Assembly (NCBI RefSeq): GCF_003918875.1
Contig: NW_025766981.1
Coordinates: 496,001-560,000, forward strand
Direction of reading: 5' to 3'
Length of the DNA stretch: 64,000 nt
Source: Haliotis rubra
Taxonomy: Eukaryota
Shown: piece by piece, positions 15,595 through 63,860 of the stretch
How the letters are laid out: every line of letters begins with the position of its first letter
Numbering within the stretch: the first letter of the stretch is position 1
Position numbers and translations under genes: made by a program
The notes under the pieces: model-generated
What the model saw: only the letters and a program-made list of their open reading frames with translations
Databases searched by the model: none
What the model was told of the DNA's origin: nothing

Positions 15595-15767
15595 GGGGCG
15601 GTGGGGTAGCCTAGTGGTTAAAGCGTTCACTCGTCACGCCGTAGACCCGGGTTCGATTCCCCACATGGGTACAATGTGTGAAGCCCATTTCTGGTGTCCC
15701 CCGCCGTGATGTTGCTGGAATATTGCTAAAAGCGGCGTAAAACCAAACTCAGTCAGTCAGTCAGTCA
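15595..15767 (+). mobile_element. SINE family A, full-length
   Basis: GGGGCGGTGGGGTAGCCTAGTGGTTAAAGCG...GGGTTCGATTCCCC...GCGGCGTAAAA(CAGT)n with TSD GACTGCCGACT. At least 20 further copies or fragments, e.g. 17799-18025, 18118-18287, 32328-32495, 37125-37283, 38649-38795, 42655-42810, 42963-43131, 46553-46713, 51152-51317, 61430-61590. Confidence 0.9.
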
Positions 15768-17880: not shown

Positions 17881-18546
17881 GTAGCCTTACGCCGGCAATA
17901 TTCCAGCAATATCACGGCAGGGGACAACAGGAATGAGCTTCACACATTGCACCCATGTGGGGAATCGAACCCGGTTCTTCGGTGTGACAAGCGGACGCTA
18001 TAACCACTAGGCTACCCCACCGCCCAGCTAGAACATAAAGTGCAGATTTAGACAATAAATAAACACAAACGAGATATCATCAGTGTGTATATATATATAC
18101 ATGTTTTGTAAGAAAGACAGACTGACTGACTGAGTTTAGTTTTACGCCGCTTTTAGCAATATTCCAGCAATATCACGGCGGGGGACACCAGAAATGGGCT
18201 TAACACATTGTGCCCATGTGGGGAATCGAACCCGGGTCTTCGGCCTGACGAGCCAACGCTTTAACCACTAGGCTACCCCACCGCCCCTTGTAAGAAAGAG
18301 ACAAGCGTAATTAATCCCGATGCCGCGACAAAAGTCAGTGCGGAAATGTCTCATTGTGCTTGTGTGAGCGTAACCCATGTACCTGGCAATGCGTACGGTG
18401 CGCCTACAATCAAGCGCCTTATTGTGTAAACATTTATCAGTGACCACAGGTCATTTGGGGTTCACTGCTCTGTGTTAGTCAATGATGTATTGGGCAGCTG
18501 GCAAATATCAGCTGTATCATGGCGTCCTGGAGACTAACATCTATTT

Positions 18547-20064: not shown

Positions 20065-23000
20065 TTATTTTACAGACAAAATTAAAATAAAACACAATAA
20101 AAAGGAGCCCAGGGACTTTCTTCATTTTCAGAAACTGTGGTAATCTAGACTTGCCACACATTCTAGACTTGCGTGGGCTACATTGGGTATATTTGTTTCA
20201 GGGTCTATATGACAGACTAGGTATCCTGTAAAAAGGTGAGTCTGACCAGGCAAATTAGTGGTTGACCGCATGAGCGATCCCTGATATCGGGTTATGATGA
20301 CAAAGAATCACATACCGAGCCCTCTTTCCTTCCTTAACTGAAAAATGTAATATATTAGGGAGCTATCCTGGACTTTTGATAATAGCATGAATCACTTTCG
20401 GGATAAAATCATCGTGTAAGGTTTTGTTAATACTGTTACAGTGCATATATTTCTTCATACAGTTTTATATTTTTTACAAATTATTCTTAAAAAAGGAAAT
20501 CCGTATATGTGCAACTCGCTGTGCATAGTCTGTCTTGTTAATGGCATAACTTGTCAAGCACAGCGGCAGTCATTCAGCAAACCTGTCCACGCCAATCGTA
20601 AACTAATTAATCAAAGATGAGGTTAGTGAGCTGTGTCGGCACCGGCCTTTCTTCTCAGGTACATCCCTTGGCCAAGTGCAGATAAGTATTCCCATCCCAG
20701 CAGGTGAATGTTTTACCAGCAATTAAAAATCAACTTTTGTTGAACAAGACCGAGACTACCATCTTACCATCCTCTTTGTCCTGTCGTAAATGCCATGGTC
20801 AAGCGATGACAGATATTTTGTTAGCAGGTGGCCCAAGTTGACCGTGGCTACGCCATAAAGAAAACCAAACCTTGTTAGGTAATCATCTTCTTACCACCTA
20901 CCTCGTGTAGTAAACTTTGTCAGCATAGGGTAGATAACGCATATGGAATCTCCAACTTTAATTTAGAGAAACTTGATAATGACAAACAAGTAGAGCTGTG
21001 GGTTATAAAATCCTGGGTTCTTCCATCTCAGGCACACATGCTTGAATAAACCCAAGGAACTCACAGCTCTCTCCTTTCTTGTTTCAAGGCTCGCTCCCAA
21101 TAGCTAATTCCCCAAATCTAGGCCTGACAGCACCTTTATCACACCTAACGCTAAAGATCGTCTTAATTGACACAACAGAGCTGTCTTAGTACGCTTGTTT
21201 CAAGCTGCGAGTATACAGGTCCATGTGCCACCACGGATTGGCTTCAAACTGTGTTACCCGATACGCTTTCCCAACGAGCCACCTTATTACTTATCTACAG
21301 TAACACGATAAATACACTCAACTGTTTAACAATAACTCATTGTGAGACGAAATTTGTAAAATCTCACCTGGTGCATTTTGATATCCTATGGTTCCGCGCG
21401 AGTGGATAATCATCCAAAAAGGACTTACTGGTAATGAGGTGAAGTCCACATCAGACTGATTTCTCCTTGATCGAGTACATGAGTTGTGTTTAATGCGGCG
21501 ACGAAGAATGTATAAGTTATATTGCCTTGGAAAGACACTCGTGCCTTACAATTCACCTTCTCGGAGACATAGAGAATACTAAACGATGTCCCGTGTAATA
21601 CCATATTTATGAAACTTGTGAATGGTATTGGTATCTAACTCGCTTTCGCTCGTGGTATTTCACGGGACATCGTTAAGTATTTTATTCATTACTCACCCAA
21701 CATTAGCAAAATAATATCTCAGAATTCAACTTAGTCATTACAGGGTCACGCGTATGAATACATTTCATTTATGATTGTCAGCATTAGTCTATTTGATTTT
21801 ATTTTGTAAAAATAGGTTAGGGTGTATGAAAAAGAGACCAAATGACTTCAACCAACATAATCTCTTTTTATATAAATGGTATAACACGCAACCGAACAGT
21901 TGAAACTTTGTTTTGACCACGTTACTTTGGTCACTTGACCGAGTGCAAATAGTTCCGACAGCACGCGATGTTATTACACAATGTGTAATAACATTGTAGA
22001 TTTGTTAGTGACAGAGTTTATTTTACAGACAAAATTAAAATAAAACACAATAAAAAGGAGCCCAGGACTTTCTTCATTTTCAGAAACTGTGGTAATCTAG
22101 ACTTGCCACACATTCTAGACTTGCGTGGGCTACATTGGGTATATTTGTTTCAGGGTCTATATGACAGACTAGGTATCCTGTAAAAAGGTGAGTCTGACCA
22201 GGCAAATTAGTGGTTGACCGCATGAGCGATCCCTGATATCGGGTTATGATGACAAAGAATCACATACCGAGCCCTCTTTCCCTTCCTTAACTGAAAAATG
22301 TAATATATTAGGGAGCTATCCTGGACTTTTGATAATAGCATGAATCACTTTCGGGATAAAATCATCGTGTAAGGTTTTGTTAATACTGTTACAGTGCATA
22401 TATTTCTTCATACAGTTTTATATTTTTTACAAATTATTCTTAAAAAAGGAAATCCGTATATGTGCAACTCGCTGTGCATAGTCTGTCTTGTTAATGGCAT
22501 AACTTGTCAAGCACAGCGGCAGTCATTCAGCAAACCTGTCCACGCCAATCGTAAACTAATTAATCAAAGATGAGGTTAGTGAGCTGTGTCGGCACCGGCC
22601 TTTCTTCTCAGGTACATCCCTTGGCCAAGTGCAGATAAGTATTCCCATCCCAGCAGGTGAATGTTTTACCAGCAATTAAAAATCAACTTTTGTTGAACAA
22701 GACCGAGACTACCATCTTACCATCCTCTTTGTCCTGTCGTAAATGCCATGGTCAAGCGATGACAGATATTTTGTTAGCAGGTGGCCCAAGTTGACCGTGG
22801 CTACGCCATAAAGAAAACCAAACCTTGTTAGGTAATCATCTTCTTACCACCTACCTCGTGTAGTAAACTTTGTCAGCATAGGGTAGATAACGCATATGGA
22901 ATCTCCAACTTTAATTTAGAGAAACTTGATAATGACAAACAAGTAGAGCTGTGGGTTATAAAATCCTGGGTTCTTCCATCTCAGGCACACATGCTTGAAT

Positions 23001-23970
23001 AAACCCAAGGAACTCACAGCTCTCTCCTTTCTTGTTTCAAGGCTCGCTCCCCAATAGCTAATTCCCCAAATCTAGGCCTGACAGCACCTTTATCACACCT
23101 AACGCTAAAGATCGTCTTAATTGACACAACAGAGCTGTCTTAGTACGCTTGTTTCAAGCTGCGAGTATACAGGTCCATGTGCCACCACGGATTGGCTTCA
23201 AACTGTGTTACCCGATACGCTTTCCCAACGAGCCACCTTATTACTTATCTACAGTAACACGATAAATACACTCAACTGTTTAACAATAACTCATTGTGAG
23301 ACGAAATTTGTAAAATCTCACCTGGTGCATTTTGATATCCTATGGTTCCGCGCGAGTGGATAATCATCCAAAAAGGACTTACTGGTAATGAGGTGAAGTC
23401 CACATCAGACTGATTTCTCCTTGATCGAGTACATGAGTTGTGTTTAATGCGGCGACGAAGAATGTATAAGTTATATTGCCTTGGAAAGACACTCGTGCCT
23501 TACAATTCACCTTCTCGGAGACATAGAGAATACTAAACGATGTCCCGTGTAATACCATATTTATGAAACTTGTGAATGGTATTGATATCTAACTCGCTTT
23601 CGCTCGTGGTATTTCACGGGACATCGTTAAGTATTTTATTCATTACTCACCCAACATTAGCAAAATAATATCTCAGAATTCAACTTACTTTACGGGTGCT
23701 TTACGCCGTCATTACAGGGGTCACGCGTATGAATACATTTCATTTATGATTGTCAGCATTAGTCTATTTGATTTTATTTTGTAAAAATAGGTTAGGGTGT
23801 ATGAAAAAGAGACCAAATGACTTCAACCAACATAATCTCTTTTTATATAAATGGTATAACACGCAACCGAACAGTTGAAACTTTGTTTTGACCACGTTAC
23901 TTTGGTCACGTGACCGAGTGCAAATAGTTCCGACAGCACGCGATGTTATTACACAACATTGTAGATTTGT
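20056..23970. repeat. ~1.95-kb near-identical tandem duplication (about 20056-22005 and 22009-23970)
   Basis: The same sequence, including an identical spurious 80-aa ORF (21167 and 23121), occurs twice, differing only by small indels and a few substitutions. Confidence 0.92.
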
Positions 23971-24456: not shown

Positions 24457-24754
24457 NNNNNNNNNNNNNNNNNNNNNNNNNNNNNNNNNNNNNNNNNNNN
24501 NNNNNNNNNNNNNNNNNNNNNNNNNNNNNNNNNNNNNNNNNNNNNNNNNNNNNNNNNNNNNNNNNNNNNNNNNNNNNNNNNNNNNNNNNNNNNNNNNNNN
24601 NNNNNNNNNNNNNNNNNNNNNNNNNNNNNNNNNNNNNNNNNNNNNNNNNNNNNNNNNNNNNNNNNNNNNNNNNNNNNNNNNNNNNNNNNNNNNNNNNNNN
24701 NNNNNNNNNNNNNNNNNNNNNNNNNNNNNNNNNNNNNNNNNNNNNNNNNNNNNN
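24457..24754. other. Assembly gap (298 N)
   Basis: Run of N. Confidence 1.
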
Positions 24755-31500: not shown

Positions 31501-34500
31501 ATTTGCTAAAAACGACTTCATGCTGTATGCAGGAGGTAAGATTTGTATTCTGATATTAGATGTTCAAACACAGCTGGAGGGGATCGTTTAGAATAATTTA
31601 GAAATTTTCATAAGCTTAACGCTTACCTAACAGACAGTTTGGAGTGTGTAATCCCCAGGGACCAGTTTCGTAGCGATCGTAGCGCTACGACTGTCGTAAG
31701 TGTTAAAGTATGGGAGTTACGATCACTTTAGCTCGTAGATCTTTTAGATCGTAGACCTTAGATCTTTTTGTGAAATGGGGCCCAGGGATAAACAGTCTAC
31801 AGTGATCCACTGAACGGAGAAATAGTCAAAGGTTACACGGATGGACTAAAAACTCATCGCTAATATCCATTATGTTTGTTGATGTTGTTGTTGTTTTTGT
31901 TGTTGATGATGATGATGATGATGTTGTTATGCAACATGTAAGGGAGGGGACCATTATAATTTGGTTTGGTTGGTTTGTTGTGTTACGCTGCACTCAGCAA
32001 TATTCCAGCTGTATAGCGGCGGTCTGTAAATAGGCAAGTCTGGACCAAACAATCCTCTGATCAACAGCATGAACATCGACCTATGAATTTGGATACGATG
32101 ACATGTGTGTCAGGAAAGGATTATGCATTCACTGCCTGACATTTTACCCCGAAGGCGTTGGCCGATGCTTATAATATCACTCACTGCTTTGTCTTTTTTA
32201 GACTCGATAATTTACTGCATACTCTTTGACTGCTATAACTGACTGGAGCATCGCGTGACTTGTTAATTGTTATGCTAAATATGTTATACACTGTCAGATT
32301 ATCTACGCCACATGCATCTAAGGACTAGTGAGTGAGTGAGGTTTTAGTTGTACGCCTCTTTTAGCAATATTCCAGCAATATCACGGCGGGGAACACCAAA
32401 AATGGGCTTCACACATTGTACCCATGTGGGGAATCGACCCCGGGTCTTCGGCGTGACGAGCGAACGCTTTAACCACTAGGCTACCCCACCGCCCCTTTGC
32501 ATTACAACGTTTATGTATTAACATGTATACTCTACAATCACGTTTCGTTTCAGTTCCTGTTGTCGGACTTGTCGGATTTGCCGCTACTCCTATCATCCGG
32601 GGCATCATGTCCAAGATGGCGCCTCAAAGTAAACAGGGTACGCCGATGAAGAATGTACTGATAATGTTATATAATATGACAACATAGATACCTTATCATG
32701 TCAAAGTAAAGAGTCATCACCAGTGTACCTGTATTACTGACTGAAATCCTATCTGATTTGTATCTTGACATGTGTACAGGAAATGTGATTTTGACCTTCT
32801 TCTCTTCATAATACTTGATAAAACTGACTGTCGTGTGTTGATTGTGTAGAAACGTTGTATATTTGGGACATTAGAATTTGTATCCTGTTATTGTGAATTT
32901 CAGTCCCTCAGGGTGCACCATATATTGCAGTGAGTGAATGTTTTTAGTCACGTCGACAGTATTTCAGCCATATCAAGACTAAAAAAGTTATGCATTAATA
33001 AAAAATTTTTAATAATAATGATAATGATAATTGTATAATTAATTTCTATAGCGCCTGTTTTCCAGCGTATCTGCTGCCCAACGGCGCTGTTACAGTCTAG
33101 CAGGCTAGTGAGGGATATGCCTGCCTGAACAATTATGTTTTTAGGTGTTTCCTGAAAGTTTGATAAGTTTCAAAATAAACTCTGTAAAACAAAGAGACTA
33201 TCACAGAAATAGTTACAACTAGCTAGCATATATCTTAAAACGTAGAAAAACATTTTGGACAATTTAACTTTTTTTACAACACGTAGTTTGGATGAAGGAA
33301 GGGAAAGAGGGTTGCGTTTGGGTGTTGTTGCCTCTCCATGCGTGACACTGACTGAGAGTTTGAGAGATTCACTTAGTAGAACTGATTACTCCTGATTACT
33401 GATTATGCAAATACAAGCAGAAACCAGGGGATAATATCAAAAGCCATCTTTGAAGACATGAGTACGACTCTGGAGAAGGATTCCGATCCTCTCACCCTAG
33501 ACTAACGCTTAGTCCCTGAATATATACTCTCCCAAAAAAGAAACGCATATAGGAATTTCAACTGTATTTTTATGTTTATTTTGAAACATCTTGTAGGCTT
33601 TATAAGTCAATGAAATATAGCGAACACCATAGGACTCATAAACAGAGCAAAACCTTTGGTAAAATGAATCACGTTTTAATTCATTGCTATTTTAAATTGC
33701 TAGTATTTTCATGATGCGTTTCTTTTTTGGGAGAGTATATATAATATTGACAGTAACAAATAATCCCATTTAATTTGAAAAGGAGCCCTAGAGAGTTGGG
33801 GGAGATTCTAGACTTGCTTTATTTGGGGCTTTAGCATTGCATGGAGGGCTGGGTGGAAGGGAAAAGATTGTAGTTCAGGGACTGTGAGACAGACTACTGT
33901 CACTCCAAACTACATATTTACAATAAATGTTCAAGGAAAAGACAAACAACATAGCATCACCTTACCTTAAATTAACAGAGCGGAGGTTGTTCAGTTTCCA
34001 AAGTTTGTATCCATTCAAACTGAAAAGTATCTACGACTGAACTGGCCACATGTTTAGAGCCCAAGGCCTTGTGTTGACTGTATGAGTGGCTTGACCCGCT
34101 TGACCTTTGAGCGGGCCTTGCTCCAAGGCTGTAATGAATGCTAAGCCAATGGTTGATCAGTAATTCTATCCTTTAAAGAGGCAAGTCTAGACTAGCGGAC
34201 AGTAGCCTTGGTCCAAGGCGTAAAACTAAACTCAATCACTCACTCACATTACTGAGAAAGAGTAATCCGAAATTAGTTACTTATGACCACTTTCTAAAAG
34301 GCATTCTGTATACATAGCTTTCGGCCTTTGGAGCTGCGCCAAAATTTGTCAGATTGATACAAAGTTCATCTAGAGTCCAGCTGTACTTCCATGTTGTCGC
34401 TGGCTGAGTGGGTTAGATCACTGGCGTTTTGGGACTAGGCGCCTCATGTTGAGTGTGTGGTGTCTAATCTATGGGTGGGAAATCTGTACTTTACTGAGAA

Positions 34501-49898: not shown

Positions 49899-52800
49899 AT
49901 GGATGACGAACCACTGATCGATGTGCTGTCCACCCCGACAGGAACCACAACCAATGTGAGGAACCTCATCGTAGTCAACATCATCGTGGGTGTTCTAACA
50001 TGTTCTACGAAGATATATGAACCTGTGCTGGGTCAGTACGTGTACCACAGAGTTGCTGATGACGTGTTCGGGAACGACAGTCGTATAAAGAACTACAGCG
50101 TTCTGGCTCCGTGTTTCCAGAACACCTCCGACCCTGGGTATGTTATGGTGGAGACTGTCCAGGAACGAACATCAACTGTTTTGTGGCATTTCTCTCTTGT
50201 TGGGGGGATCATCGCCAGTGTTGTTAATATAGGACTCGGAGCTTATTCAGATATCATCGGGAGAAAGTTTCTTTTCATAACATGCATTATAGGCCAACTT
50301 TTGAGAAATGCCATTGCATCTGTGATAATCTGGTTCCATCTCAGCATAGACTACTTTTACATTGTGTCAAGTGTAGACGGGATGTTCGGAGGGCCGTGGG
50401 GTCTGATGCTGTTGGCGTATGCCTACATCGCTGACAACACCCCTCCACAACAGGCTCGATCCTTTGGAATGCTATTCTTGGAGTGCATAAATGCTTTAGC
50501 TGAGGCAGCAGCATCAACTGCAGCTGGGTATTTCATCTTACGTTCAGGATTCTTCTACCCTTCTGTCTTGGCCTGTTGCGTGACGGTCTTAGGGATATGT
50601 ATCGTGGCAGTATGTTTAACAGACACCGTGGTGAATAATAACACCAGTCAGAGCAGGTGTTCGTACATCTTCAACGTGTATCGCCTGTTCGTGAAGGAAG
50701 GAGATCTACGTCAGCGCGTCTTGTTGTGGGTCGGCTTGGGAGCGTTCTTCTTTTCGGTCATCAGCACGTCGTCGGAGATCAACGTGGACCTCCTGTTCGA
50801 GATGAACCAGCCATTCTGTTGGAGCCCCTTCCAGAACGGCATATACGATACAGTGAGCACTGTGGTAAGGCGTACTGTAGGAACAGGCGTGGTCAAAGGG
50901 CTACAGAAGTACATCTCCGATGAAGTTTTGGGAGTGTTGGGATCAGTGTTTGTCATCATCGGAGACGTCCTGTTCGGTTTAGCAACATCAGGCTGGATGT
51001 TGTATCTGGCATGTAAGTTACCTTTCTGTGACTGATTCTGGAAAAAAAGGCAAAATTCAAAGTTTATCACGAATGACGAGGTTGTTTAGCCAAATGTGTT
51101 TTCATTATGTAATAGATTGTGTCACTCAAACACATCCATTTCATCCAGTGTTGGGGCGGTGGGGTAGCCTCATGGTAAAAGTGTCCGTTCGTCACACTGA
51201 AAGTCCGTGTTCGATTCTCCCACATGGGTACAATGTGTAAAGACCATGTCTGGTGTCCCCCGCCATGATATTGCGGGAATATTGCTAAAAACGGCGTAAA
51301 ACCATACTCACTCATTCATCCAGTGTTACAGCATCCACTACACCTAGTCACGATCATGCTCAAACATATGTCACGTGGTGTCATTTGCCACAGATGTGAA
51401 TAAGTGTATATTTTGCTGTGTGAGATAAGCCTGAACATTGATTCATGCACATACTAAGTCCCAAATGACCTGTTTTGTTTCAGTTCCTGGTGTGGGTCTC
51501 ATTGGGTTCCTGGTGTCACCTATGGCTAGAGGCATTATGTCCAAACTAGTTCCACCCCAAAGACATGGTTGGTATCCGTCTGTTTATCTGCCTCAACAGC
51601 ATGTCTGTTTTAAACTTTAATTTCTCTTTATATAACCCCGTACATCCACCAAGCGCACACACTGATGGTTACATTTCCGTATGGGCGTGTGACAAAACAT
51701 TACGGCAATATCACGCGTTGTATACTTTTGATACTAAAACAAATTTATATACCAGGAACGTTTCATACACGGCAATAATCGATATTGTTATGTTTCCTTG
51801 CATAATATCTTTGTTGAAAGGTCATTAAACCATGAGCACAGTAAGAGCACTGTAACAGTGTACAGTTATTATGGTTATGAAACAGTGTTCTTTTAGTGTG
51901 AGTTCCAGAACAAGACCATTGTGAGTATTGCGAGTATTGCGTTGATAGATTAGGAGGAGAAGAATAGAGGTGACAGCAAGGGTGATGACTCCCAGAAGAA
52001 TTGAGACATGGTAGTCTGCAAGATCAGAAACAACGAAGCTGGGACTGGCAGTAGTTTGGGGATTATAATTCAACGATGGGGGTTGTACCGTTGTTACTGG
52101 AGAAACCCGAGTGACCAATAACATTGCTGCAGAGAGTGCACGAATTTTGTAAAACATCCAAATACACAAGATAATCGAAAGAATTGAAGTACCTGAAGCT
52201 GTTATGGCAATTATGGCATTAGTATCTGGCCAGGAACTTGGTAAGGTGATTTGCCCATCAAGCAGAGGCTCCGCAATAGACTGAAATATTGTTTCAGTTT
52301 TCTTAGCGCTTTCTGCCACACGCTTCAGACTTAGATGCGATTTTTGATCATTGGCCAAAACACTAGAAATTTCATGCGAAAAAATGTTAAATTTAGGAAT
52401 TGAGAAATTAACCATTTTTCGAAAGGTGGTATCACCAGCAATGCTAGAGAGGGTAGAGTCATCAAAGAAGTGTTGAAGAAGAGCAAGATTGACAGGATGT
52501 AGATGTGTGATTTGAGTGTGAGATGTACGACAGGAACCGAAGGGTGCAGGATAAAAGAGATCTTCAGTAGAGAGAGAACAGTAGCAAGGAGTCTTAATAA
52601 GACAAAAATTACAGCCAGAAATCACACGATGCATGGTGGGACAGGTAAGTGTAAGAAATGGAATTCTATAAACTAAGACATTAGAGGAATCAACTGAGAT
52701 AAGTTGAGGTGGTTGAGCTTTCGTAACATAGCGGAAATCACAAAGTGACTTGATGAGACTTTTACTGTTTTGGAAAAGTGCAAGGACACATGATGGTTTA

Positions 52801-55800
52801 GGTGAAGACTGAAGCGCTATTCTGAAGGGACAGTGGATAACAAAATCATCACCTGTGCAGGAGGCTAGACTAGAAGGATCAAGGCTAATGTGATGCCGAG
52901 AATCAGATGAAAGGGCAAAATAAGATGGAGCGTCCAACAGTTGGGTGGAGTGGGAGGAAGTATTGTTCACAGGCACTGGGACAGAGATAACTTTATATAT
53001 TTGAAAAGGTGTAGTCAAAGAAGATAAGGGAAATTTAACAGAAACATAGATATGTGACTTCGTGCGAGCGAAGATAAATTTAGCATGAGAATAGTAAAAG
53101 GTTGGACTTGTTTGGAGCAAATGGAAATTTGGGTATTTATTGGATAAAATTAATGCCAGATGATGGATCGTTTGTTCCAAAATATGAGGGGCAATGAGCA
53201 GGGGAGACAACTTATTCTTAGCCAAGTCTAAAATTCCTAATTTCAGTTCCTCAAGCTGATGCTCCACAGTATTTGACTTTTGTATTTGGTCAATTAGAAG
53301 GGAAGTCAGGGATGCAAAGGTGGATTGGATATTTTTAGCATTATTCTGTATTGCAGTGGCTGTGAACGTGACGGCATCATGATTTGCCTTAACGCCTTTT
53401 AGGGCATTTTAAAGCGAGTGTCTACTAATTTCATGAAAGAGGAGAGATGGACTGAGTGCTGCTGTAATACATTTGAAAGGTTGATGTCATGTTTGGTAAG
53501 CGCATTTATATGCTTGGCCAGCAGGTTGACGTCGTCAGTTGTGGCTGTACCAAATAAAGTTTTGAAAGTGAACCTACAAAACTAAGGACGGCTCGTTTTG
53601 AACGACTGGATGATGGGATTTTGGATTCTGGAATTAATTTAAGTATTTGCTGTCTTGTTTCATTCAGTTTGGCGACACATTTAGTTTTAATAACGTTAAG
53701 ATGCATTTGTATTTGATGTAGGAGAGCGCATGTGCCATTGCCTTGATGACATCCGCTCATGGTAGGAATGCTTGGAATATGGGGCATCTTAACTTCATAA
53801 GTGTGTGTCCAATATTCTGTTGAGAAATGGGCTTGGGTGGTAGGCTGAAAAACTATGCCATAGTTGAGTCTTTGTACTGGACTGGTGCCAAGGGTAGGAT
53901 GAGCGAACAGAGCCATAAGCCACAGGATTATCAAGCTCCAGGACGGACCTTTGATGAAATGAGAAAGGAAGCCATTAGAGTTGACCTGGCTGAGAAGAAT
54001 GTTGTGGCCACAAACATCAAAACAACCTAGCACTATAGGACACAGAAACTGGGTAACTGCAAAAGGGGTTGGTCACTCATAACAATGGCAAATTGACTCA
54101 CGTCATAAAGATCACTGTGGTAGCCAAACAACACCTATGCAAATGATCTACTGAAAAAACTTGTGCCCAAGTTTGCGCCGCCTACCAGACATTGTCCGAG
54201 ACCTATGGAAATGCTTGATCAGGGATGGATCAAGATTGGAAGCAGGCTCCCAAGTAGTTTGTGAATAGCCTAACCATTTGATTTGGTACATTTTGGTACC
54301 CTTTGCCCGTTTACATCTAAGTATTTGTTCAACAGGAAATGTTTCATCGTCTTGTGATGTGTCTTCCTGTTGCTGAGAAGTAGATGGTGAAGAGCCTGAA
54401 TCAGAGATGTGTGGCTCTGGAGGTACCATCTGTGTGTTGCATTGAGTGTGATTGTCAGCAGAAGTGCTGGAGTGCGGGGTCTGGTGTGTGTCAGGGCGTG
54501 TGTTGTCTTCAGCAGAAGTGCTGGGATTAGGAGACTGACTTCCAGGGGCAGGAATGTAATCTGGAAGTCTGTCATTGGCTTGGCGAGCAATGTGAGGCTT
54601 GATTCGATTGGCGTGGATAAGGGCCTTGTGTGTTTTGTTTGTTTGGACATGTTGCAGTTTGAAGGTGTGATTTGGACCTAACTCGAGAATTGAGTAAGGC
54701 CCTAACCATTTAACTGACAGCTTTGGGGACCTACCGGGAAGTACATGGGAATTCTTCATCAGGACCAAATCACCTATAGAGAATTGGGGCTCTCTAGCTT
54801 TGAGGTCAGTGCGCTCTTTGTTGATGTCTTGGGACAATTTAATATTGTCTTTGGCAATGGTCTTGGCTACTCTGAGATTGTCCAGAAGGGTCTTAAGATG
54901 ACGCTCTGCAGTTTTGCCTAGAGATGGCTTTGGAAGAAGGGCAACATCAATAGGGAGATGCATCTCTCTGCCAAAGAGCAGATAGAAGGGAGTGTAGCCA
55001 GTGGAGGCACATGGTGCGCTGCGCATTGACATCATTATGCAGGGAATTAGGTCTGCCCAGTTGGATTGGTCAGAGTCACAGTAGGCTCTGAGTGCCTGTT
55101 CAATGGTCCTATTGCGTCTTTCACACATGCCATTGGTTTCAGGATGATATGACGATGTCAGATGATGCTTAATGTCCAACAATTCACAAAGGGCATTGAC
55201 AAGTTTAGAAGTGAACTGCCGACCTCTATCCGACAGGAGAGTTTTGGGAGCACCAAAGCGAGTGATGACCTGATTGAAAAGAATGTTGGCTACCTCAGTG
55301 GCATCTTGAGTTTTCATAGCAAAGCCCTCTGTCCAGCGGGAAAAGGAATCCACTACCAGCAGGACATATTTAAAACCATCTTTGGTTTCAGGGAGGGGAC
55401 CAAGGATATCTATATGAATGCGTGAAAAGGTATCCTCGATGGGCATTGGGACCATAGGAGCATGTCTGCCATGAGTCATGGGTTTAATTTTCTGACATGT
55501 CTCACACGACCTAATGTAGTTGTCTATGTCCTGATACATGCCAGGCCAGTGGTACTTAGACAGGAGTGCTTGAAAAGTAGAATCCCTACCCAGATGACAA
55601 CCTCCTACTTTTGAGTCATGATAGGCAAATAGGAGATCTTTGCGCTTGATAAGTGGGACAACAAGCTGTGTAATTTGAGGAGGTCTATGGGCCTTGGCAC
55701 CTCTATGTTTAGCTTGATAAACATGATAGAGAATACCATCTCTAACAACATATTCCTGTGAGCGACCTACAAGACCTTTGACTTGAACATCTTTGTAAGT

Positions 55801-58800
55801 TGCAGGGATTTCACCTTTGGAGATGTAGTCAATAATGGGTCTAAGGTCAGGGGAATTGTATTGCTGTGTCACCAACTGATCATCGTCTGTGTCAATCGCT
55901 GCAACGATGAGAGATGGACCAGATGAGGGTGGTTTGTTAGCATAATACAAATCAACCGCTAGTGGCTCAGGAGTGTCTGGATCCTGGTGAAGAGATGATA
56001 GGGAGGTTGATGGTGGGTCAGTAAGAGGGACAGAGGTTGATGTGGAAGGAAGGGGTGAGGTTGGGGATGCATCAGGGGTTGAAGAGGGTGCAAAGGGAGA
56101 TGCAGATACGACTAAAACTGCTTTGTCTGTGGTGTTGGATTTGCATGAGACAACATGGGCATACTTTCTCTTGGAGGGCAATGGAGGAGACGGAATGTCA
56201 TCTGTGACAGGTGCAATCTTAGGCTCAGGGTATTTCGTGCGAGACAAAGCATCTGCATTTGTGTTTGATTTGCCTGGCCTGTGGACTATATCAAAATCAT
56301 AGTCTTGTAACATGATTGACCATCGACCAAGGCGACCTGTTTCTTCCTTAATGTTTTTGAGCCAAGTAAGTGCCTTGTGATCAGTGTAAATTTTGAATTT
56401 GTTTCCAGCCAAATAGACTCTAAACGTTTTTATGCCCTCTACGACTGCCAAACATTCTAGCTGTGTCACCCCCCAATTCTTTTCTGACGAATGAAGTGAT
56501 CGTCCCCCATAACAGATGACATGTTCCTTACCATCTGGACCAAGTTGCCCTAAAATATATCCAAGAGATGTGGTGGAAGCATCTGTCGTGAGAATGAAGG
56601 GTTTTGTAGGATCAGGATAGACAAGGATAGGAGATGTTGTCAGTTTTTGCTTTAAGGAGAGAGAAAGCCTGTTGACATTTGTCTGTCCAAGAAAATTTGA
56701 CATCCTTCTTGAGAGTGTCATAGAGAGGTGCTGCTATACCCGAGAAATTGGGAACAAATTTCCTATAGTAACTGCACAGACCGAGAAAATGACGAACATC
56801 ATGAACGTTTTTGGGTGGGGGAATTTGTGTGACTGCTTCTATTTTAGATTGATCAACTTCAATACCATTTTTGGTGAAAATGTGCCCTAGATATTGGACT
56901 TGTTTTGCTGCAAATTTACATTTGCTTGGTTTCAAAGTCAAGCCAGCTTGCTTTATCTTTTGAAAAACACATTTTAGATGATTCAAATGTTCTGAAAATG
57001 TTTTGGAGTAGACAATGATGTCATCCACATAAATAAGAATGTATTTCCAGTTCATGTCTTTTAGCGCTTCTGAAATAGTACTTTGAAATGCCATGGGAGC
57101 ATTTTTAAGGCCAAATGGGAGACGGTTCCATTCAAAAACACCATCAGGAGTAATGAAAGCAGATTTGTGTTTTGTTTCTGGATGAAGAGGAATTTGCCAA
57201 AACCCACTAGCACAATCCAAAACACTGAAAATTTTTGCATGACTTTCTCCAACTGCATCAATGACATCTTCAAACCTAATTAGAGGAAAGAAAATTGGCT
57301 TGGTGAGAGCATTCAGGCGTCTGTAATCCACGGCAAAACGATAAGTGTTGTCACGTTTCTTTACCATAACGACTGGGGAGTGCCACTCTGATGAACTAGG
57401 TTGAATAATTTTGGCATCTAACATTTCTTTAATTTGTCTTGAGCACTCTTTCCTAACTTCAGCACTTTGGCGATAAAAGGGGCGCCTAACGGGTCTAGCA
57501 TCACCTGTCTCTATCCTATGTTTGTGAAGATGTGTTTGACCAAGTTCAGACCAATTGTGTGCAAAAGCAGAGTGTTGAGAGTTGAGGAAAGAAAGAAGTT
57601 CTTGTTTTTGGACAGGAGACAGGTCTGAATCAGAAAGGTCAAAGGATAGTTCTGAAGTAGTAGTGTGTTTGCGATGAGATGGGGACTGGGGTGGAGTTGT
57701 CAAGACATGGGGTGTATAATCTGAATTAGTCTGACCTCGTGTAACTGCTGCAGTACTGGCCTGAGAATGAGGACGACATGTGTCATGGGATGGTTGGGGT
57801 TCAGGTTCAGGTGAATCTGGCAATACTGAGACACTGGATGGGTGCACTTCACATGCTACAGCTAGCACTCTTTTAGTATTTAAGTGAACAGGGGATTTGG
57901 TAGGGTTGAGGAAGCGCATATAAACACCCTTCTTGGACTTAGTCACTAAACATCTGCCGCCCTGCAGTTTAACTCTTGCAAGCTCAGGAACAGGTTCTAA
58001 TAGAAGAGTAGAGCCTAGCCTATGACGAGAGATTTGGACTGGAATGTCTACCTGACAAGAGGGTGGAATTGTGATGGGTTTCTTTGCTCTAGCATAGCCT
58101 GCACTAGATTCAACTAGGGGAACAGTGATCAGACCTTCTTGGATAATCAGGCACCTGTCAGCTAGGGAGATAGCTGCTTTGTATTCAGAAAGGAAGTCCA
58201 TGCCTAATATCAGAGAATGGTGTAGAGATTGAAAAACATAGAAGGATTGGGAGAGGAGGAGATGACCTATGCAGATATCAAGAGAAATGGAACCTAGCAC
58301 CTTATGAACTTCGCCACCTACACCAATGATTTCATGAAGGTCAGAGTCTTGTAAGTGCCGTAAATTGTATCCTACTTTTTGAAGGTAGCTCATGCTGACA
58401 CAGGACACAGAGGCACCTGTATCAACTAGAGCTGTTGTCTTCACTTGCTTCACCTTAACTAGAACAGTGTTCTTAACCAAGGGAGCCACAAGTGAGACCA
58501 TAGGTTTCTCATGCCTGATCCCAGCCATCTGAGAATCAGGCGCGAGTCCCTATTGCCTTGGGTATTCATTCTGAGAATGATATGCCCTTATGCACACGCT
58601 AGAATGGTGACCTACTTTATGGCAAAAGTACACTGGGTATTAAAATGTGGGCAATATAATCTGTCTGAACAGTACATACCACATCCGATACATCTTTGCT
58701 GCAGGAACGGGGGTACTGGGTACTGTGGGCGCCACTGATGACTGCTGGTCTGTCTTTGAGGGCCCTGATTCCTTGGATGTGGTCGACCTTGAGGCAGCGG

Positions 58801-61800
58801 GTACTGTTGAGGAGGTGGTGGTTGTCTCTGGATCTGGGCGCCATGATGCTGCTGCCGTCTGGGTTGGTAGCGTTGGGGACGATGTGGCTGGAACTGTTGC
58901 TGCTGCTGTTGCTGTTGTTGTTGTTCTGAAGACGGTCTGGTGGCTTCTGTAGCAGCAGCCTGAACTGGTGGGGCCTCAGTCTTTGTGATTAGGGTGGCCA
59001 CAAGTTCTGATAGGTGGTCTACCTTCATGGCCATGTTGATGTCCTGAGAACTCACACTAGTCTGGGATCTCTCAGCCAGTTCAGCATGGTGACGGACATC
59101 TTCCAGGGTGGCAGGCTCTTTGTTAATAACCCACTGGCGGATGCTAGGCCTAAGCCCATTGACGGCTACTGCCACAGTCACAGACACTGGCAGTGCTAAA
59201 TTATGTGTAGCTTTCTGTAATCTTGCCAAATAATCTGCACTGGTTTCTCCCGTAGACTGCGACATTTGTAACACATTCACGTCGAAGGTTCTTGGTCTGT
59301 GAAACCTTGACGTGAAGGCTTCCTCCAGATGGGTCATACTTTGTTTGGTATCGTTGGGAAGATCTTGGTGCCATACCTTGGCTGTCCCTCTAAATAGAAT
59401 GGGAACAGCAGGCACTGTCGTTCCTCATTGTAACCAAACAGCTTGACAAAATTTGTGAAATCTTGCCACCAGGATGTAGCTTCCTCCTGTCCGTTGAAGG
59501 GCCTCAGTTTGATGTGGGGAGTCGCCATTGTAAAGGATGGGGATGCAGGTGTTGATGAAGGCGTTGATGATGTTGTAGAGGATGATGTGTGTGTTGTTGA
59601 TGACGAAGCCGCGGTTGATGCTGTTGATGCTGTTCTTGATGTTGTTGATGCTGTTGACGGCGTTGAAGACGTAACTGTGGGAATGGTCTGGGAGTGGGAA
59701 GATGGGAGGGGTGAAACCTGCGTCTTGAGTGAACTGGTTAGCTGTAACCTTGGCTCAGGCCGTCGAAGCTTCTGTTTGTAATTCGTAGGCGTGGCACCGG
59801 TCATCTAGGATTTTCCTCCACCAGTTGAAACAGTTTGCTTGCGCTACTGTTTTAGACCTAGAATTGCTACGGGGAATTAGCTCCGGGATCTCCACGCCTT
59901 CAAATACAAACAGAGAGGATCTCAGGCAAAACAGGAATCTTTATTGGTTAAACACATGAAGGCAAAGGACACATATTCAGTTAACTGGTAATTCCGAATT
60001 ATTGGTCAAGAGAAATAATTATAATATTGTTGCAGAAAACTATTCAATTGAAATAACAAACAATATGACAAGTGACACGACCGAGATAAAAATACAGATG
60101 CTTAGAACATGTTGTAAACGTTATACACGTTTGGCATTTATTGACTTTAAGCATCCACAACTCCAATAACTAAAGCGAACGTTTTATTTTAACGGAAATA
60201 GTTTAGGCGTCTGATATACTAATGGTGACCTGTGAAAGTAATGATTTCTTATCTGGGATTCGCGATTATTCATAAATTCATTATATATATAAACTACAAA
60301 GGAATTAACATATAGCGACTAAACGGAAAATTCGAGCAGCACTTTAGAATAAGTCAGATGATTTCATTGTTCAAGCAGGGTAACACGGTTAGAAGGACTT
60401 TAAGCAAATTTAACCAAATGAAAAAGTAACAAGTAAAAGTGACTTACCTTCAAATACAAACAGAGAGGATCTCAGGCAAAACAGGAATAACTCAGTGGCG
60501 AGCTACACCTGCATTTATACCCGAATCTCCTGGAATTTGAAAGCAAGTCGAAGAGCGCATGTCACACTGGTCATATTACGCAAGTTTGACAAAGCTGGGT
60601 AGCCAAAGCTGGGGCAAAGTTAGCTAATTGGAAACATAATCGCTGCTGGAATGTTACCGTTCGGGTCGGTGGCCTTTGTTAATTGTTTTGGGTTGGCCAG
60701 CCGTGTCTAGTTCGACAATGCACCTACTCTGTTAATCACTGTGTGTCTGAGACACAAAGAGCAGTGGCCTAACACTTACTAATCTCCCAGAGTCGCTAGT
60801 CCGGTTCTGGTAGCTTGAATGGTATAGATTTGAGAATAGTTGTGTAGGTTCTGTTAGCTATATGCCTTAACTGGACTGAGAATGTAAAATTATAAGATTG
60901 TAAAACAAATCAAAAATAGATAAAAACTTGAAGACAAGTAAGGTAAATTTTGGCACTGTTATAGTTATAACTGCATCTACAATGCAGACTTCAATTCGTG
61001 TTGGATGTTAACGTCTTCTATGACGTCGTTTCGACAGGATGTAACTCAAGTATACGACGTCAGTTTTGAACAATATATGTGAATTAATAGTTCATATTGC
61101 CATGCCCGTGTTACATTTAGCTTCCGGTGTATATATCGCTTCGGTTAGATCAAGTTATGCCTCTTAGCAGATGTCACGTAAACGAAATTGCATCGCGATG
61201 CTTTAAGGAACAACATGACGTCATCATAACTATGACGTCACACACAAACAACAATTATCCCTGCCACTGTAGCTGGTTAGTTGTTCTTTACTGTTTGTTG
61301 TTTAACTCATTGCTTTTTTACTGTTAATAAATGGAAGGATGGAATGAAGATGGACGATAAACAGAATATCACCATTCTGTTCCATATTGGTAGTCACACA
61401 TATGTCACACGTTTATACTTCATGATATGGCGGGGAGTGTAGCCTTGTGGTTAAAGCGTTCGCCCCTCGCGCCCAAGACCTTGGTTAGGTTCCCCACATG
61501 GGTTTAATTGGTCAAGCCAATGTTTGGTGTCCCTGTCTGGTTATATTACTGGATTGTTGCTACATGCGGCTTAAAACTATACTCACTCCTTTGTGAATAA
61601 AAATTCACATATCTGTCTCTACAGGTGCTGTGTTTGCTAGTCTGGCCGTGATGGAGTCGCTCAGCAGTGCGTTAGGTGCTGTGACCTTCAACAACATCTA
61701 CAAGGCCTCCGTCGCTGTCTGGGGAGGGGCGGTGTATGCTGCCATGGCAGCATCCCATTTCTTAGCTCTGTGGTTCTTTCTGTAAGTATTGCTGGATTAT

Positions 61801-62343
61801 TGCTAAAAGCGGCGTAAAACTAAACTTACTCTTTCTGTAAGTGTTGTTTTATTTTACAATGACATCCAGATCTAATACGAGTACAAACACATTTAAACGT
61901 TCAAAAGAAACTAATAGTGTACCAGGCTGCAATTTATGATACAAATAATCTGGGCCCCTTTTGTATTACTATTATTAATGAATTTATTTCTGGGACTATG
62001 TTGATCAAATACCTGTGAAGATCTGGGTTAGAATTGTTGTATTCAGCAACTCATATTTGAAAGACTTGACTCACTGACTTGGTCTGACATATCACCATGT
62101 CCCAGTTGCGCAGATATATGTTCATGCTGTTGATCACTGGACTGTCTGGTCCAGGTTCGATTATTTACAGGCCGCCGCCATATGGCAGGCATATTGCTGT
62201 GTGCGGACTTAAACAACAATCAAACAAACAAAAACAAAGCACTATTCCACCTTATTCATTGGAAATCAGTGAACACTTGTGAAATGTTCCTGTTTTCTTG
62301 CAGAGCTTTCAGAATTCTGAACAAAGGACAGTATTCTACTTGA
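49899..62343 (+). CDS. SLC46-family transporter, paralog 6 (464 aa, 4 exons; intron 2 carries a retroelement)
   Basis: Exons 49899-51012 (MDDEPLI), 51484-51567 (84), 61625-61781 (157), 62304-62343 (TGA); 1395 nt in frame, canonical GT-AG. Confidence 0.9.
51825..54033 (-). CDS. env: env-like class I fusion glycoprotein (errantivirus/baculovirus-F-like), two 1-nt frameshifts
   Basis: Signal-like WSLIILWLMALFAHPTLG, RLNYGIVF, furin site RSKR (53593-53604) followed by a hydrophobic fusion peptide AVLSFVGSLSK(T)LFGTA, heptad-like helices, Cys cluster and TM AIIAITASGTSILSIILCIWMFY. Adding one A at 53560-63 and one at 53407-10 joins the two track ORFs. Confidence 0.82.
54148..58549 (-). CDS. pol: pol polyprotein: aspartic protease, reverse transcriptase, RNase H, integrase, C-terminal chromodomain; one frameshift near 56650
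   Basis: ALVDTGAS (PR); LPFGL and YVDD (RT); TDAS and YTDH (RH); H..GCHLG..CETC and DDE core with GPY module (IN); FPVEQIL...YQIKWLGYSQTTWEPASNL (chromodomain). Confidence 0.95.
58550..59804 (-). CDS. gag: gag (capsid-like domain, Q/P-rich linker, CCHC zinc knuckle); two 1-nt frameshifts
   Basis: LRPFNG...W...F...LLFPFYLEG(T)AKVW typical of retrotransposon gag, and QSTGETSADY..RL MHR-like motif. Restoring one T at 58624-27 gives CTFCHKVGHHSSVC (CX2CX4HX4C), ending at TAG 58552-58550. The start is either 59804 or 59528 (MATPHIK). Confidence 0.85.
59814..59823 (-). promoter_or_regulatory. Primer binding site, tRNA-Ala-like
   Basis: TGGTGGAGGA begins 2 nt after the LTR end (...GTTTCA-AC-TGG) and is complementary to a ...UCCUCCACCA tRNA 3' end. 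Confidence 0.75.
59940..59945 (-). terminator. LTR polyadenylation signal AATAAA
   Basis: AATAAA on the minus strand followed by T/GT-rich sequence, about 115 nt before the LTR end. Confidence 0.65.
60484..60519 (-). promoter_or_regulatory. LTR core promoter: TATA box plus initiator
   Basis: TATAAAT at 60519-60513; TTATTCC (YYANWYY) with its A at 60488, 31 nt downstream of the first T. Confidence 0.7.
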
Positions 62344-63571
62344 AACAACATAAACAGCCAACCACCACAGGCGTCGTCATTTGCTGCAGACGTGTCACGT
62401 GATGCACTCCGTCATCCATCGAACTCGGGAAGGAAGTTCGTGCACGCGACGTTCGCACACTCGACAGTGCACAATATTTTGATAAGAATAGATCCAATGT
62501 GTTTTCAGTGTTGAGCTAGGTTTCGCATAGGCTTAAACTATGGCGCTGTGGTGAATTTTGAACAAAAAGCTGATATATATGTATAGTCTGCAGGTAGCCA
62601 TGTTCGGCAATAGAAACACAGTTTATCTCGTATTTATTTCACCATGACTATATTGATTGCAAACGTTTTGTAACAAAATGTCTTGGGTGGAGTCCCATGT
62701 TTTGAGCGAACTACAAAAATGAATTAAAAACCCATATCTAGACATTTAACAAAGGTCGGTGTTGTATCAGCCCAGACACGGTTTTTAATGCATTCATACT
62801 ATACTTGGGTCGAAAGCAACTTCGTAAGGTTACGTGAAGTGGCCACCCTTGAAAGAAACCGCACGTCAACATTATGACGTCATACAGTTCACTGAAATCA
62901 GTCGGCTGCAGAAAAGCGCGATATTCCAAGTTCGTATATACACTCTCTTAGTGTTTCTCCATAGTGTTTTCTGTCCAACATGCATTGTCACACATATGTT
63001 GTATCAGCTGTATTTGTTTGTTTGTTTTTTTATAGTACTTGTACATTATATTTCTCTCAAGAGTGCCTATTGGCAATGGCCAAAAAAGGATTACGTTTGT
63101 ATAAATAAATTACTTCTGTGATCATTGCCTCAGATAAATCGATGGTATTTTGTAAATAATCGAATCTGGACCAGACAATCCAGTGATCAACGTCATGAGC
63201 ATCGATCTATGCAATTGAGATATGATGACGTGTCAACTAAATCAGTGAGCTTGATCACCTCATCTCGTTAGTTGCCTCTGACAACTTGCATTTGTTCTCC
63301 ACGGGTCTAAATCGATGGTTAAATGAACTATGTATCTATGATATCGAATATATATTCACGGTGTATTATTAGAGTGTTTATGTTATCATTTAATTGAGAC
63401 AACATGTCAATTTCGTGGACATGTATCACCAAACATTACATGGGTTTACATTTTTTCGATTGTGTAACTAAGGCCATCTGTTCTTATGTGTTTCTTATCA
63501 CAAACCCCAAACAGCAAGAGTAGACTGGTGAATTTTTTTTAAAGAATAGTTACTATAAATCTTTTTTTCTG

Positions 63572-63860
63572 TCATTGTGTAACTTATTTTATGAAATTTA
63601 CAATTGAAAACACTTAGTAATGGTCTTCAAATTTATTTATGATGGGAAAGAAATTAAAAGAATAATTATTATATATGTTTTTAAATGTTATTGTGTAACT
63701 TTTTATGATATTATATAATTAAGATGACTTAGTAACAGCCTTTTAAATATATTTATGATGGGGAAAAAATTAAAAGAATAATTATTATATATGTTTATAC
63801 ATGTCATTGTGTAACTTTTTATGAAATTTTAGAATTGAGATCACTTAGTAATAGTCTTTA
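63572..63860. repeat. ~117-bp AT-rich tandem repeat, ~2.5 copies
   Basis: ATTGTGTAACTT...ACTTAGTAA...TTTATGATGGG...ATTAAAAGAATAATTATTATATATG recurs at about 63572, 63689 and 63805. Confidence 0.8.

Follow-up and report, generated by a model that had tools for sequence, protein, structure and literature searches.

A 64,000-nt stretch of Haliotis rubra DNA (NCBI RefSeq assembly GCF_003918875.1, contig NW_025766981.1, positions 496,001 to 560,000; hereafter the window) contains, on its minus strand, a broken copy of an env-carrying, chromodomain-bearing Ty3/gypsy (Metaviridae) element. Pfam searches recovered aspartyl protease families, RVT_1 (1e-37), RT_RNaseH (1e-35), Integrase_H2C2 (7e-19), and rve (4e-17), in that order, followed by Chromo (1e-9) at the integrase C-terminus and Baculo_F (8e-7) after pol. 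The coding part therefore fits the "errantivirus-like" chromodomain clade with an F-type env reported from Cnidaria, Mollusca, and Annelida (PMC13524379). The presence of a DDE integrase and a retroviral-type protease, with no GIY-YIG or recombinase hit, separates the element from Penelope-like and DIRS/Ngaro elements, and the repeats described below lie inside one LTR rather than being split between the element's ends. The best matches in the protein collection searched share 51–55% (gag), 53–58% (pol), and 81% (env) identity, and env is 81–83% identical to an H. asinina protein carrying PF12259. No near-identical family copies were found in that collection, and the comparisons below thus rest on related families. 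From tblastn, only counts and outer bounds were taken for gag and only counts for pol.

Features of the element (window positions, minus strand).
Feature	Position	Description	Basis
5′ LTR	59826..60963	1138 bp; U3, copy A, intervening segment, copy B, U5	Start motif TATAACAG at 60963, the same as at the LTR starts of L003, L004, and L005; end ...CTGTTTCA at 59826, corresponding to LTR ends fixed in L004 and L005
U3	60489..60963	Contains TATAAAT at 60519-60513, 31 nt before copy A	Sequence motif; comparison with relatives
Copy A	60447..60488	42-nt repeat; predicted first exon 60488-60448 (41 nt) plus the G of the donor GT at 60447 (AAG|GTAAGT); starts at an initiator-like TTATTCC	Sequence identity and motifs
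Intervening segment	59939..60446	508 nt, 32% G+C; AATAAA at 59945-59940, one G at 59939; further AATAAA at 60188 and 60142	Sequence; first ~110 nt conserved in the Haliotis relatives, the rest not
Predicted intron	60447-59898	550 nt, GT...AG; intervening segment together with copy B	Sequence motifs
Copy B	59897..59938	42-nt repeat; predicted cleavage region, G/U-rich downstream element, and pyrimidine tract (15/20) ending in AG at 59899-59898; ends ...TTTGAAG|G and continues CGTGGAGATCC; predicted exon 2 starts at 59897	Sequence identity and motifs
U5 remainder	59826..59896	GCGTGGAGATCC...TAATTCCCC...CTGTTTCA, counted from 59897; terminal hairpin-forming inverted repeat	Homologous to the sequence after copy B in the 3′ LTRs of L003, L004, and L005; fold prediction
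Primer-binding-site-like sequence	59808..59823	TGGTGGAGGAAAATCC, two bases after the LTR end	Same position and similar sequence in L005, L006, L011, and L015
gag	58553..59804	Broken (2 frame changes, 1 stop)	tblastn with the intact relative P0001
pol	54148..58528	Protease, reverse transcriptase, RNase H, integrase, chromodomain; broken (1 frame change)	Pfam; tblastn with P0003 and P0004
env	51882..53907	Baculovirus-F-type; broken (2 frame changes, 1 stop), lacking about its last 100 codons; the element ends here, with no polypurine tract and no 3′ LTR	Pfam Baculo_F; tblastn with P0123 and P0124 covers reference residues 1-625 of 727

The 5′ LTR contains a repeat in which copies A and B are identical over 42/42 bases with a start-to-start spacing of 550. 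A perfect 42-mer pair is not expected by chance in 64 kb (about 2e9 position pairs against 4^42 possible sequences), and the 40-nt flanks of the two copies are unrelated (10/40 upstream, 8/40 downstream). All coordinates given in the original prediction, which had placed copy A between a TATA box and a splice donor and copy B one G after a poly(A) signal, are correct. A blastn search (word size 7) with 59800-61600 against the whole window returned only SINE matches and the A/B pair, so the identification of this region as an LTR rests on comparison with relatives. An Rfam scan of 51000-62000 gave no hits, the fold of the repeat-U5-leader region is unremarkable (z = 0.49), and ARAGORN found no tRNA genes in the window or in six loci that could be used to type the primer-binding-site-like sequence.

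In order to evaluate whether this layout is more than a peculiarity of one dead copy, related elements were collected from molluscs by protein similarity (loci with L numbers). The layout is present in the L003 3′ LTR, both L004 LTRs, the L005 3′ LTR, L008, and both L010 LTRs of Gigantopelta, so that, with the window, it is shared by five diverged gastropod families (Haliotis, Gigantopelta), and a variant occurs in the bivalve Pinctada (L015). LTR ends were fixed independently by an uninterrupted paralogous site in L004 and by a 4-bp target duplication in L005. LTR pairs of relatives are 94–99.9% identical, 4-bp duplications were seen in L004 and L005, and purine-rich runs ending in GGGG precede the 3′ LTRs of relatives. 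A one-off duplication or insertion without biological meaning, which the single copy in the window and the dead state of the element might suggest, is refuted by the recurrence of the layout, with different repeat sequences and lengths, in other species and families. The LTR pieces of L009 (H. cracherodii) lack the TATA and donor region and are therefore uninformative, L007 ends inside U3, and L011 holds only the internal region.

In all five gastropod families, the repeat begins 29–31 nt after the first T of the TATA box, and in the window, L003, and L004 it begins at the A of a YYANWYY motif, where an RNA 5′ end, and so the end of strong-stop DNA, is expected. The first copy ends exactly at the AG|GT of a consensus-like donor (AAG|GTAAGT, GTAAGC, GTAAGA, TAG|GTAAGT). 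The identity therefore runs past the expected cleavage site up to the exon end, as a splice model predicts and a plain long-R model does not. The second copy ends in 13–18 pyrimidines out of 20 followed by AG, and carries the poly(A) signal just before or inside it. Donors and acceptors were tabulated for seven LTRs from six families; the acceptor is AAG|G in four families, which is uncommon, and TAG|G and CAG|G in L010 and L015. Between the copies lies a variable A+T-rich segment of 390–1750 nt with 25–36% G+C, of which only the first ~110 nt are conserved within Haliotis. These LTRs thus depart from the conventional form with a single R, since two copies of the start-site-proximal sequence lie 458–1802 nt apart in one LTR. 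The more distant relative L001 has an ordinary LTR with the same motifs in single copy, which shows what the split layout derives from.

The two copies change in concert. Within elements, A against B is 42/42, 42/42, 34/34, 33/34, 55/56, and 64/67 (96–100%), while A against A between families is 45–91%, and flanks match at 5–17/40. The few differences between A and B occur in the older insertions with LTR pairs of 94–95% identity, as expected if A equals B at insertion and both then decay. Eight of nine informative LTRs keep the segment. The exception is the 5′ LTR of L005, which lacks the segment exactly at the repeat while the 3′ LTR of the same insertion, inside one target duplication, keeps it; a switch from A to B during plus-strand strong-stop synthesis would give this product. 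Although the sample is small, with nine gastropod LTRs and none from the window's own family at near-identity, these results support the original prediction, which had proposed testing whether A and B co-vary while the intervening segment diverges: the repeat was not absent elsewhere, the copies did not diverge independently, and LTRs without the segment did not dominate.

Together these comparisons are best explained by a 5′ LTR whose R region is split into two identical copies flanking a spliceosomal intron, a reading to which we assign a probability of roughly 0.6, as the start site, splice junction, and cleavage site are all predicted from sequence motifs without RNA evidence. In the inferred mechanism, transcription starts at the first base of A, and in the 5′ LTR the donor after A is joined to the AG at the end of B. 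This removes the segment, copy B, and the active poly(A) signal, and leaves an RNA that begins A-U5-primer site-gag. In the 3′ LTR, the transcript is cleaved and polyadenylated inside B, upstream of that AG, so this intron copy cannot be spliced and stays in the RNA. Reverse transcription then makes strong-stop DNA complementary to A-U5, whose end pairs with the piece of B at the RNA's 3′ end and is extended through the segment, A, and U3. Both new LTRs therefore again read U3-A-segment-B-U5, with B rewritten from A, and the element would get the benefits of a spliced 5′ leader and of clearing a premature poly(A) site without losing the intron from its progeny. Because the same donor and acceptor are also present in the 3′ LTR part of the transcript, the model needs cleavage to win there and splicing to win at the 5′ end, which is plausible but untested. 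In addition, the homology available for the jump, from the start of B to the cleavage site, may be only about 12–20 nt in the window's family. A 1823-nt ENA contig (L006) begins one base before the repeat and reads repeat-U5-gag, but genomic copy B-U5 reads the same and assembly graphs break at boundaries between conserved and variable sequence, so this contig is ambiguous as RNA-level evidence.

Two details of the original prediction require revision. The suggestion that the lone G before copy B is a copied cap is not needed, since AATAAAG is a conserved motif that also occurs where there is no repeat boundary (in L001, and inside the repeat in L010 and L015). The statement that splicing removes the premature poly(A) signal needs rewording, since in three families AATAAA lies inside the repeat and copy A carries one too; what is always inside the predicted intron is the poly(A) signal that has no donor next to it.

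An alternative is an ordinary long-R LTR, in which the genomic RNA is unspliced, R runs from A through the segment into B, and the donor after A serves only the env messenger and/or binds U1 snRNP to silence the nearby poly(A) signal, with A and B kept alike by selection on each or by occasional gene conversion. A donor in R upstream of the poly(A) signal with U1-mediated suppression is documented for foamy viruses (PMC3694450), an unspliced RNA with this LTR could replicate by the standard scheme, and the repeat is more conserved between the window, L003, and L006 than U5 or gag are, so selection on its sequence exists. Splicing is accordingly not strictly required for inheritance, but only to explain why A and B stay identical. 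However, standard replication copies A and B independently, so nothing would keep them identical while they diverge to 45–67% between families. Nor does this scheme explain why the identity stops exactly at the predicted start site and at the donor in five families, or why copy B ends in a pyrimidine tract plus AG, and gene conversion over 34–67 nt in every lineage is unlikely. We therefore regard this alternative as possible but unlikely.

Transcription could instead start at copy B, driven by sequences in the intervening segment, with copy A an inert part of U3 left over from a fusion of two LTR-like units. A fusion of [U3-R] with [old U3-R-U5] is a conceivable origin of the layout, and in the bivalve L015 the first copy lies at the first base of the LTR with no upstream promoter, while a TATATG lies 34 nt before the second copy, an arrangement that the splice model does not explain. 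In all five gastropod families, however, a TATA box lies about 31 nt before A and none lies before B, and in the window, L003, and L004/L005 the sequence just before B is AATAAA. Furthermore, an inert copy A would diverge from B, which is not seen, and the donor after A would have no role, making this reading very doubtful. Other origins were rejected. A head-to-tail cDNA junction or a 2-LTR-circle junction is contradicted by the lack of a poly(A) stretch and of LTR sequence after env, and insertion of a foreign element with a long target duplication by a repeat length that differs by family and always matches the stretch from start site to donor. For Tf1-like self-priming, there is only a 7-nt complementarity, which is not conserved.

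We found no prior description of this layout, although several known systems share parts of it. Foamy virus LTRs likewise carry a cap-proximal donor upstream of the poly(A) signal (here, by sequence motif only, 41 nt after the predicted start and about 500 nt before AATAAA) and face the same problem of silencing the 5′ copy of the poly(A) site while using the 3′ copy; U1 snRNP binding at the donor probably contributes here too. They have a single R, no repeated first exon, and unspliced genomic RNA, and suppression was shown to be independent of splicing (PMC3694450), whereas here the LTR holds a complete predicted donor-acceptor pair and two R copies, and the coding organisation is not that of a spumaretrovirus. 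Engineered split-intron retroviral vectors (Ismail et al. 2000, as described in PMC3182074) also exploit the copying of 3′ LTR sequence into the 5′ LTR to create an intron in the next generation's transcript, but their donor sits in the 3′ LTR and the acceptor downstream of the packaging signal, so the intron appears once in the target cell and is not restored by a repeated exon in every cycle. Penelope-like elements (Arkhipova et al. 2003, cited in PMC2377424) retain a functional spliceosomal intron of 75 nt, 46 nt after the start site and inside a terminal-repeat region. Retention there is ascribed to use of unspliced RNA and to the selective value of the intron, and no repeated first exon is described. 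Spliced LTR-contained transcripts of maize LTR retrotransposons (bioRxiv 10.64898/2026.05.08.723830) were presented as, to those authors' knowledge, the first evidence that LTRs themselves contain introns; these are non-coding RNAs contained within the LTR of plant elements, with no duplicated exon, link to strand transfer, or inheritance mechanism described. In the main text of the report on the chromodomain-env clade (PMC13524379), the terms splice donor, spliced, and polyadenylation do not occur, and intron appears only in a reference title.

Retroelements pass through RNA, so a spliced intron should be lost, which is why retroviruses and LTR retrotransposons are taken to be intron-poor, and why being intronless can mark them for host surveillance. 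The broader reading, that a whole clade of mollusc retrovirus-like elements has solved this paradox by splitting R around an intron that is rebuilt at first-strand transfer, appears only slightly more likely than not. If correct, it would add a fourth way of dealing with the duplicated poly(A) site to the known three (placing the signal in U3, closeness to the promoter, and U1 suppression by a nearby splice donor), would provide a natural counterpart to split-intron vectors, and would explain a striking case of concerted evolution of a 34–77 nt repeat. The layout also bears on annotation, as LTR finders and R-region mapping assume one R, while these LTRs are 1.1–2.4 kb, mostly because of the predicted intron.

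Analysis of the minus strand of the window confirmed the original prediction of a perfect 42-bp repeat in every detail. A TATAAAT box is followed after 24 nt by copy A and then by TAAGT..., and about 500 nt further on the sequence reads AATAAA, a single G, copy B, and CGTGGAGATCC. The two copies are identical over 42/42 bases at a spacing of 550, while their 40-nt flanks are unrelated (10/40 upstream and 8/40 downstream). The repeat consists of a 41-nt exon-like part plus a G, which in A is the first base of the donor AAG|GTAAGT and in B is the first base after ...TTTGAAG|. The predicted intron is therefore GT...AG and 550 nt long. Copy A starts at the A of TTATTCC, which fits the initiator pattern YYANWYY, 31 nt after the first T of the TATA box.

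Downstream on the same strand lie gag, pol, and an envelope gene of the baculovirus-F type, with pol carrying protease, reverse transcriptase, RNase H, integrase, and a C-terminal chromodomain. The element is an env-carrying Ty3/gypsy element of the chromodomain clade recently described from Cnidaria, Mollusca and Annelida (PMC13524379). The closest proteins are annotated as uncharacterised host proteins of abalones, with env 81–83% identical to an H. asinina protein, pol 53–58%, and gag 51–55%. The copy is dead: gag has two frame changes and one stop, pol has one frame change, and env has two frame changes and one stop and lacks about its last 100 codons. The element ends at this point, without a polypurine tract or a 3′ LTR, and no second copy of the region 59800-61600 exists anywhere in the window. 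From the window alone, then, the description of this region as an LTR in the original prediction was an assumption.

We looked up chromosomal loci of mollusc genome assemblies that encode relatives of the window's gag, pol, and env, along with a few short contigs. All of the loci are annotated as host proteins, and none is a virus record. In the closest relative, from H. asinina (L003), the 3′ LTR reads purine-rich tract, TAATATAACAG..., U3, TATATAAG, 23 nt, ATTCCTGC...TTTTTGAAG, GTAAGTCAC..., about 1175 nt, AATAAAAC, the same 42 nt again, then GCGTGGAGATCC...TTAATTCCCC...CTGTTTTA and flanking DNA. An H. asinina element of another family (L004) sits in a duplicated 2.7-kb host segment whose other copy is uninterrupted, an exact empty-site comparison that fixes the LTR ends (TATAACAG...GACTTCA) and a 4-bp target duplication. 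Its 3′ LTR has TATATAAG, a 34-nt repeat, GTAAGCC, about 1730 nt, AATAAAG, the repeat again, and U5, and its 5′ LTR is 99.5% identical as far as it goes, before an internal deletion. A further insertion of the same family (L005; 95% LTR pair, target duplication CTAT) has the full layout in its 3′ LTR, while its 5′ LTR lacks the segment and one repeat copy precisely. An H. rubra element (L008) has a 51–56 nt repeat, GTAAGA, and a spacing of 1802, and an element of Gigantopelta aegis (L010), a different gastropod order, has a repeat of about 65 nt, GTAAGT, and a spacing of 458 in both LTRs. In contrast, a more distant H. rufescens element in which no env was seen (L001) has a conventional LTR in which the same motifs occur once: TATA, start, AATAAAG, ...CTCTCTGTTTTAAAG|GTGACAG...TTAATTCCCC. 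A distant relative (L011) holds an apparently intact internal region. By homology, the window's LTR runs from TATAACAG... to ...CTGTTTCA, and is followed by two bases, a TGG-starting primer-site-like sequence, and the gag ATG.

Coordinates of features in the window and in related loci.
Sequence	Feature	Coordinates	Strand
window	LTR, by homology	60963 to 59826	-
window	TATAAAT	60519-60513	-
window	Copy A	60488-60447	-
window	Exon-like part of the repeat	60488-60448	-
window	Predicted intron	60447-59898	-
window	First ~110 nt after the donor	60340-60446	
window	AATAAA	59945-59940	-
window	Copy B	59938-59897	-
window	End of U5, hairpin-forming (same position in L003, L004, L006)	59826-59860	
window	Primer-site-like sequence	59823-59808	-
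window	gag ATG	59804	-
window	End of the truncated element	about 51882	-
window	SINE copies bracketing the retroelement	61429-61591 and 51155-51316	
window	Other SINE sites (examples)	9354-9508, 18135-18289, 32343-32497	
window	Open reading frame with MFS_1 match	49899-51035	+
window	Tandem duplication	20079-23956	
window	N run	24457-24754	
window	28-bp minisatellite and 116-bp tandem repeat	9662-10193 and 63538-63857	
L005 (H. asinina)	5′ LTR lacking the segment versus 3′ LTR keeping it	11571-12106 versus 21452-23835	
L004 (H. asinina)	Duplicated host segment, uninterrupted copy versus interrupted copy	98-2808 versus 5047-7048 plus 15004-15753	
L015 (Pinctada imbricata)	LTRs	3025-3975 and 13674-14624	
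L001, L003, L004, L007 (relative ending inside U3), L010	Palindromic motif	L001:13360-13402, L003:12322-12358, L004:12585-12619, L007:3040-3066, L010:11392-11426	
L006 (ENA ERZ27264536, contig k141_578849)	Repeat-U5-primer site-gag	1-150	

These comparisons show that the layout is a family trait rather than an accident of this copy, although the sample is small and was chosen by protein similarity. Eight of nine informative gastropod LTRs carry the segment. In all five gastropod families the repeat starts 29–31 nt after the first T of the TATA box and ends exactly at AG|GTAAG. The second copy always ends in a pyrimidine-rich run (13–18 of 20) followed by AG, although the acceptor is AAG|G in four families, which is uncommon. 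The working poly(A) signal lies 1–2 nt before the second copy (window, L003, L004/L005) or inside it (L008, L010). Within elements, A and B are 42/42, 42/42, 34/34, 33/34, 55/56, and 64/67 identical, while the A copies of different families are only 45–91% identical and differ in length. The window and L003 differ at three positions of the repeat, and each difference is present in both copies. The few A/B mismatches are found in L005 and L010, whose LTR pairs are 94–95% identical, and in L008, which has no LTR pair to date it; the L005 and L010 cases fit a model in which the copies are identical at insertion and then decay. The segment between the copies is 390–1750 nt long with 25–36% G+C. 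Only its first ~110 nt are conserved within Haliotis (window, L003, L004, and L005), including a shared CTTGAAYAATGAA block; this stretch could be a splicing or transcription control element.

Standard reverse transcription copies everything between the polypurine tract and the 3′ R, then adds the R-U5 that was copied from the 5′ end of the RNA. If the RNA starts at A and is spliced from the donor after A to the AG at the end of B, its 5′ end reads A-U5. If the 3′ LTR part of the same RNA is cleaved inside B, upstream of that AG, this intron copy has no acceptor and stays in the RNA. Strong-stop DNA, the complement of A-U5, would then pair with the stub of B at the 3′ end of the RNA and be extended through the poly(A) signal, the segment, A, and U3, so that both new LTRs read U3-A-segment-B-U5 and B is a fresh copy of A. 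The homology for this jump may be only 12–20 nt in the window's family, and unspliced RNA could also replicate as a long-R element. This single scheme explains the TATA box before A, the donor after A, the acceptor-like end of B, the poly(A) signal at B, the identity that begins at the start site and ends at the splice junction, running past the cleavage site, the co-variation of A and B, and the free divergence of the segment. The original prediction of a spliced LTR that restores its own intron passes the comparative tests set for it, and is the only scheme we could construct that accounts for both boundaries and for the concerted identity, although without RNA data it is still a model in which the start site, splice, cleavage site, and strand-transfer target are inferred from sequence only.

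Why splicing should win at the 5′ end and cleavage at the 3′ end is likewise inferred, with likely contributions from cap-proximal enhancement of splicing, from U1 snRNP at the donor suppressing the nearby signal, as in foamy viruses (PMC3694450), and from the lack of a definable downstream exon at the 3′ LTR. Since copy A also contains AATAAA in L008, L010, and the pearl oyster relative L015, the benefit is better stated as the poly(A) site without an adjacent donor always lying inside the intron. The L005 insertion, with a segment-less 5′ LTR and a complete 3′ LTR inside one target duplication, has two possible origins. One is a switch from A to B during plus-strand strong-stop synthesis, since the left LTR follows that strand and the right LTR follows the minus strand, and the other is later recombination between A and B. 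In L015, each 951-bp LTR holds a 74-nt repeat with CAG|GTAACC after the first copy and ...TTCCAG|G at the end of the second. However, the first copy begins at the very first base of the LTR, with no U3, TATA, or other promoter upstream, an arrangement we cannot explain, while a TATATG lies 34 nt before the second copy; no clear target duplication was found.

While the coding part places the element in a known clade, we found no description of the LTR layout among open-access papers and preprints, although an older description in a subscription journal cannot be excluded. A 2026 maize preprint reports spliced non-coding transcripts contained in LTRs and calls this the first evidence of introns in LTRs. 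In the main text of the survey of env-carrying Ty3/gypsy elements (PMC13524379), the terms splice donor, spliced, and polyadenylation do not occur. Among the closest analogues, the foamy virus LTR has a donor in R before the poly(A) signal but one R and an unspliced genome (PMC3694450). Penelope-like elements retain an intron near the start site but belong to a different class, and split-intron retroviral vectors are an engineered design that uses LTR copying to create an intron.

The end of U5 is a hairpin-forming sequence whose 3′ arm is the LTR terminus (AAACAGT...ACTGTTT), and it is imperfectly inverted relative to the LTR start (TATAACAGT). The primer-site-like sequence after it varies between families (TGGTGGAGG..., TGGCGGATC..., TGGTGCAGAG..., TGATGGAGATC...), and no tRNA could be assigned without a tRNA gene to match. 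A conserved palindromic motif of unknown function (CTTTTGCGGTCAAAAGC or CTTTTGAGGACAAAAGC) lies about 15–20 nt before the purine run that precedes the 3′ LTR in all relatives, from abalone to Gigantopelta, a region that is missing in the window's truncated copy. A short contig of unknown sample type (L006) starts one base before the repeat and reads repeat-U5-primer site-intact gag. Its repeat differs by one base from that of L003, although its gag is only about 50% identical to the window's; the repeat is far more conserved than the gene next to it.

Elsewhere in the window, a tRNA-related SINE family is very abundant. Two copies in the same orientation bracket the retroelement, one of which lies about 560 nt past the point where the element is truncated, and at least 13 other sites were found; a SINE next to the element is 86% identical to one in H. 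rufescens. A long open reading frame with a Major Facilitator Superfamily match (Pfam MFS_1, 2e-8) is probably a host exon, and runs convergently towards the truncated end of the element. A tandem duplication of about 1953 bp has stretches of 100% identity and lies close to an assembly gap, and may be real or an assembly artefact. The window also contains a 28-bp minisatellite of about 19 units and a 116-bp tandem repeat of about 3 units.
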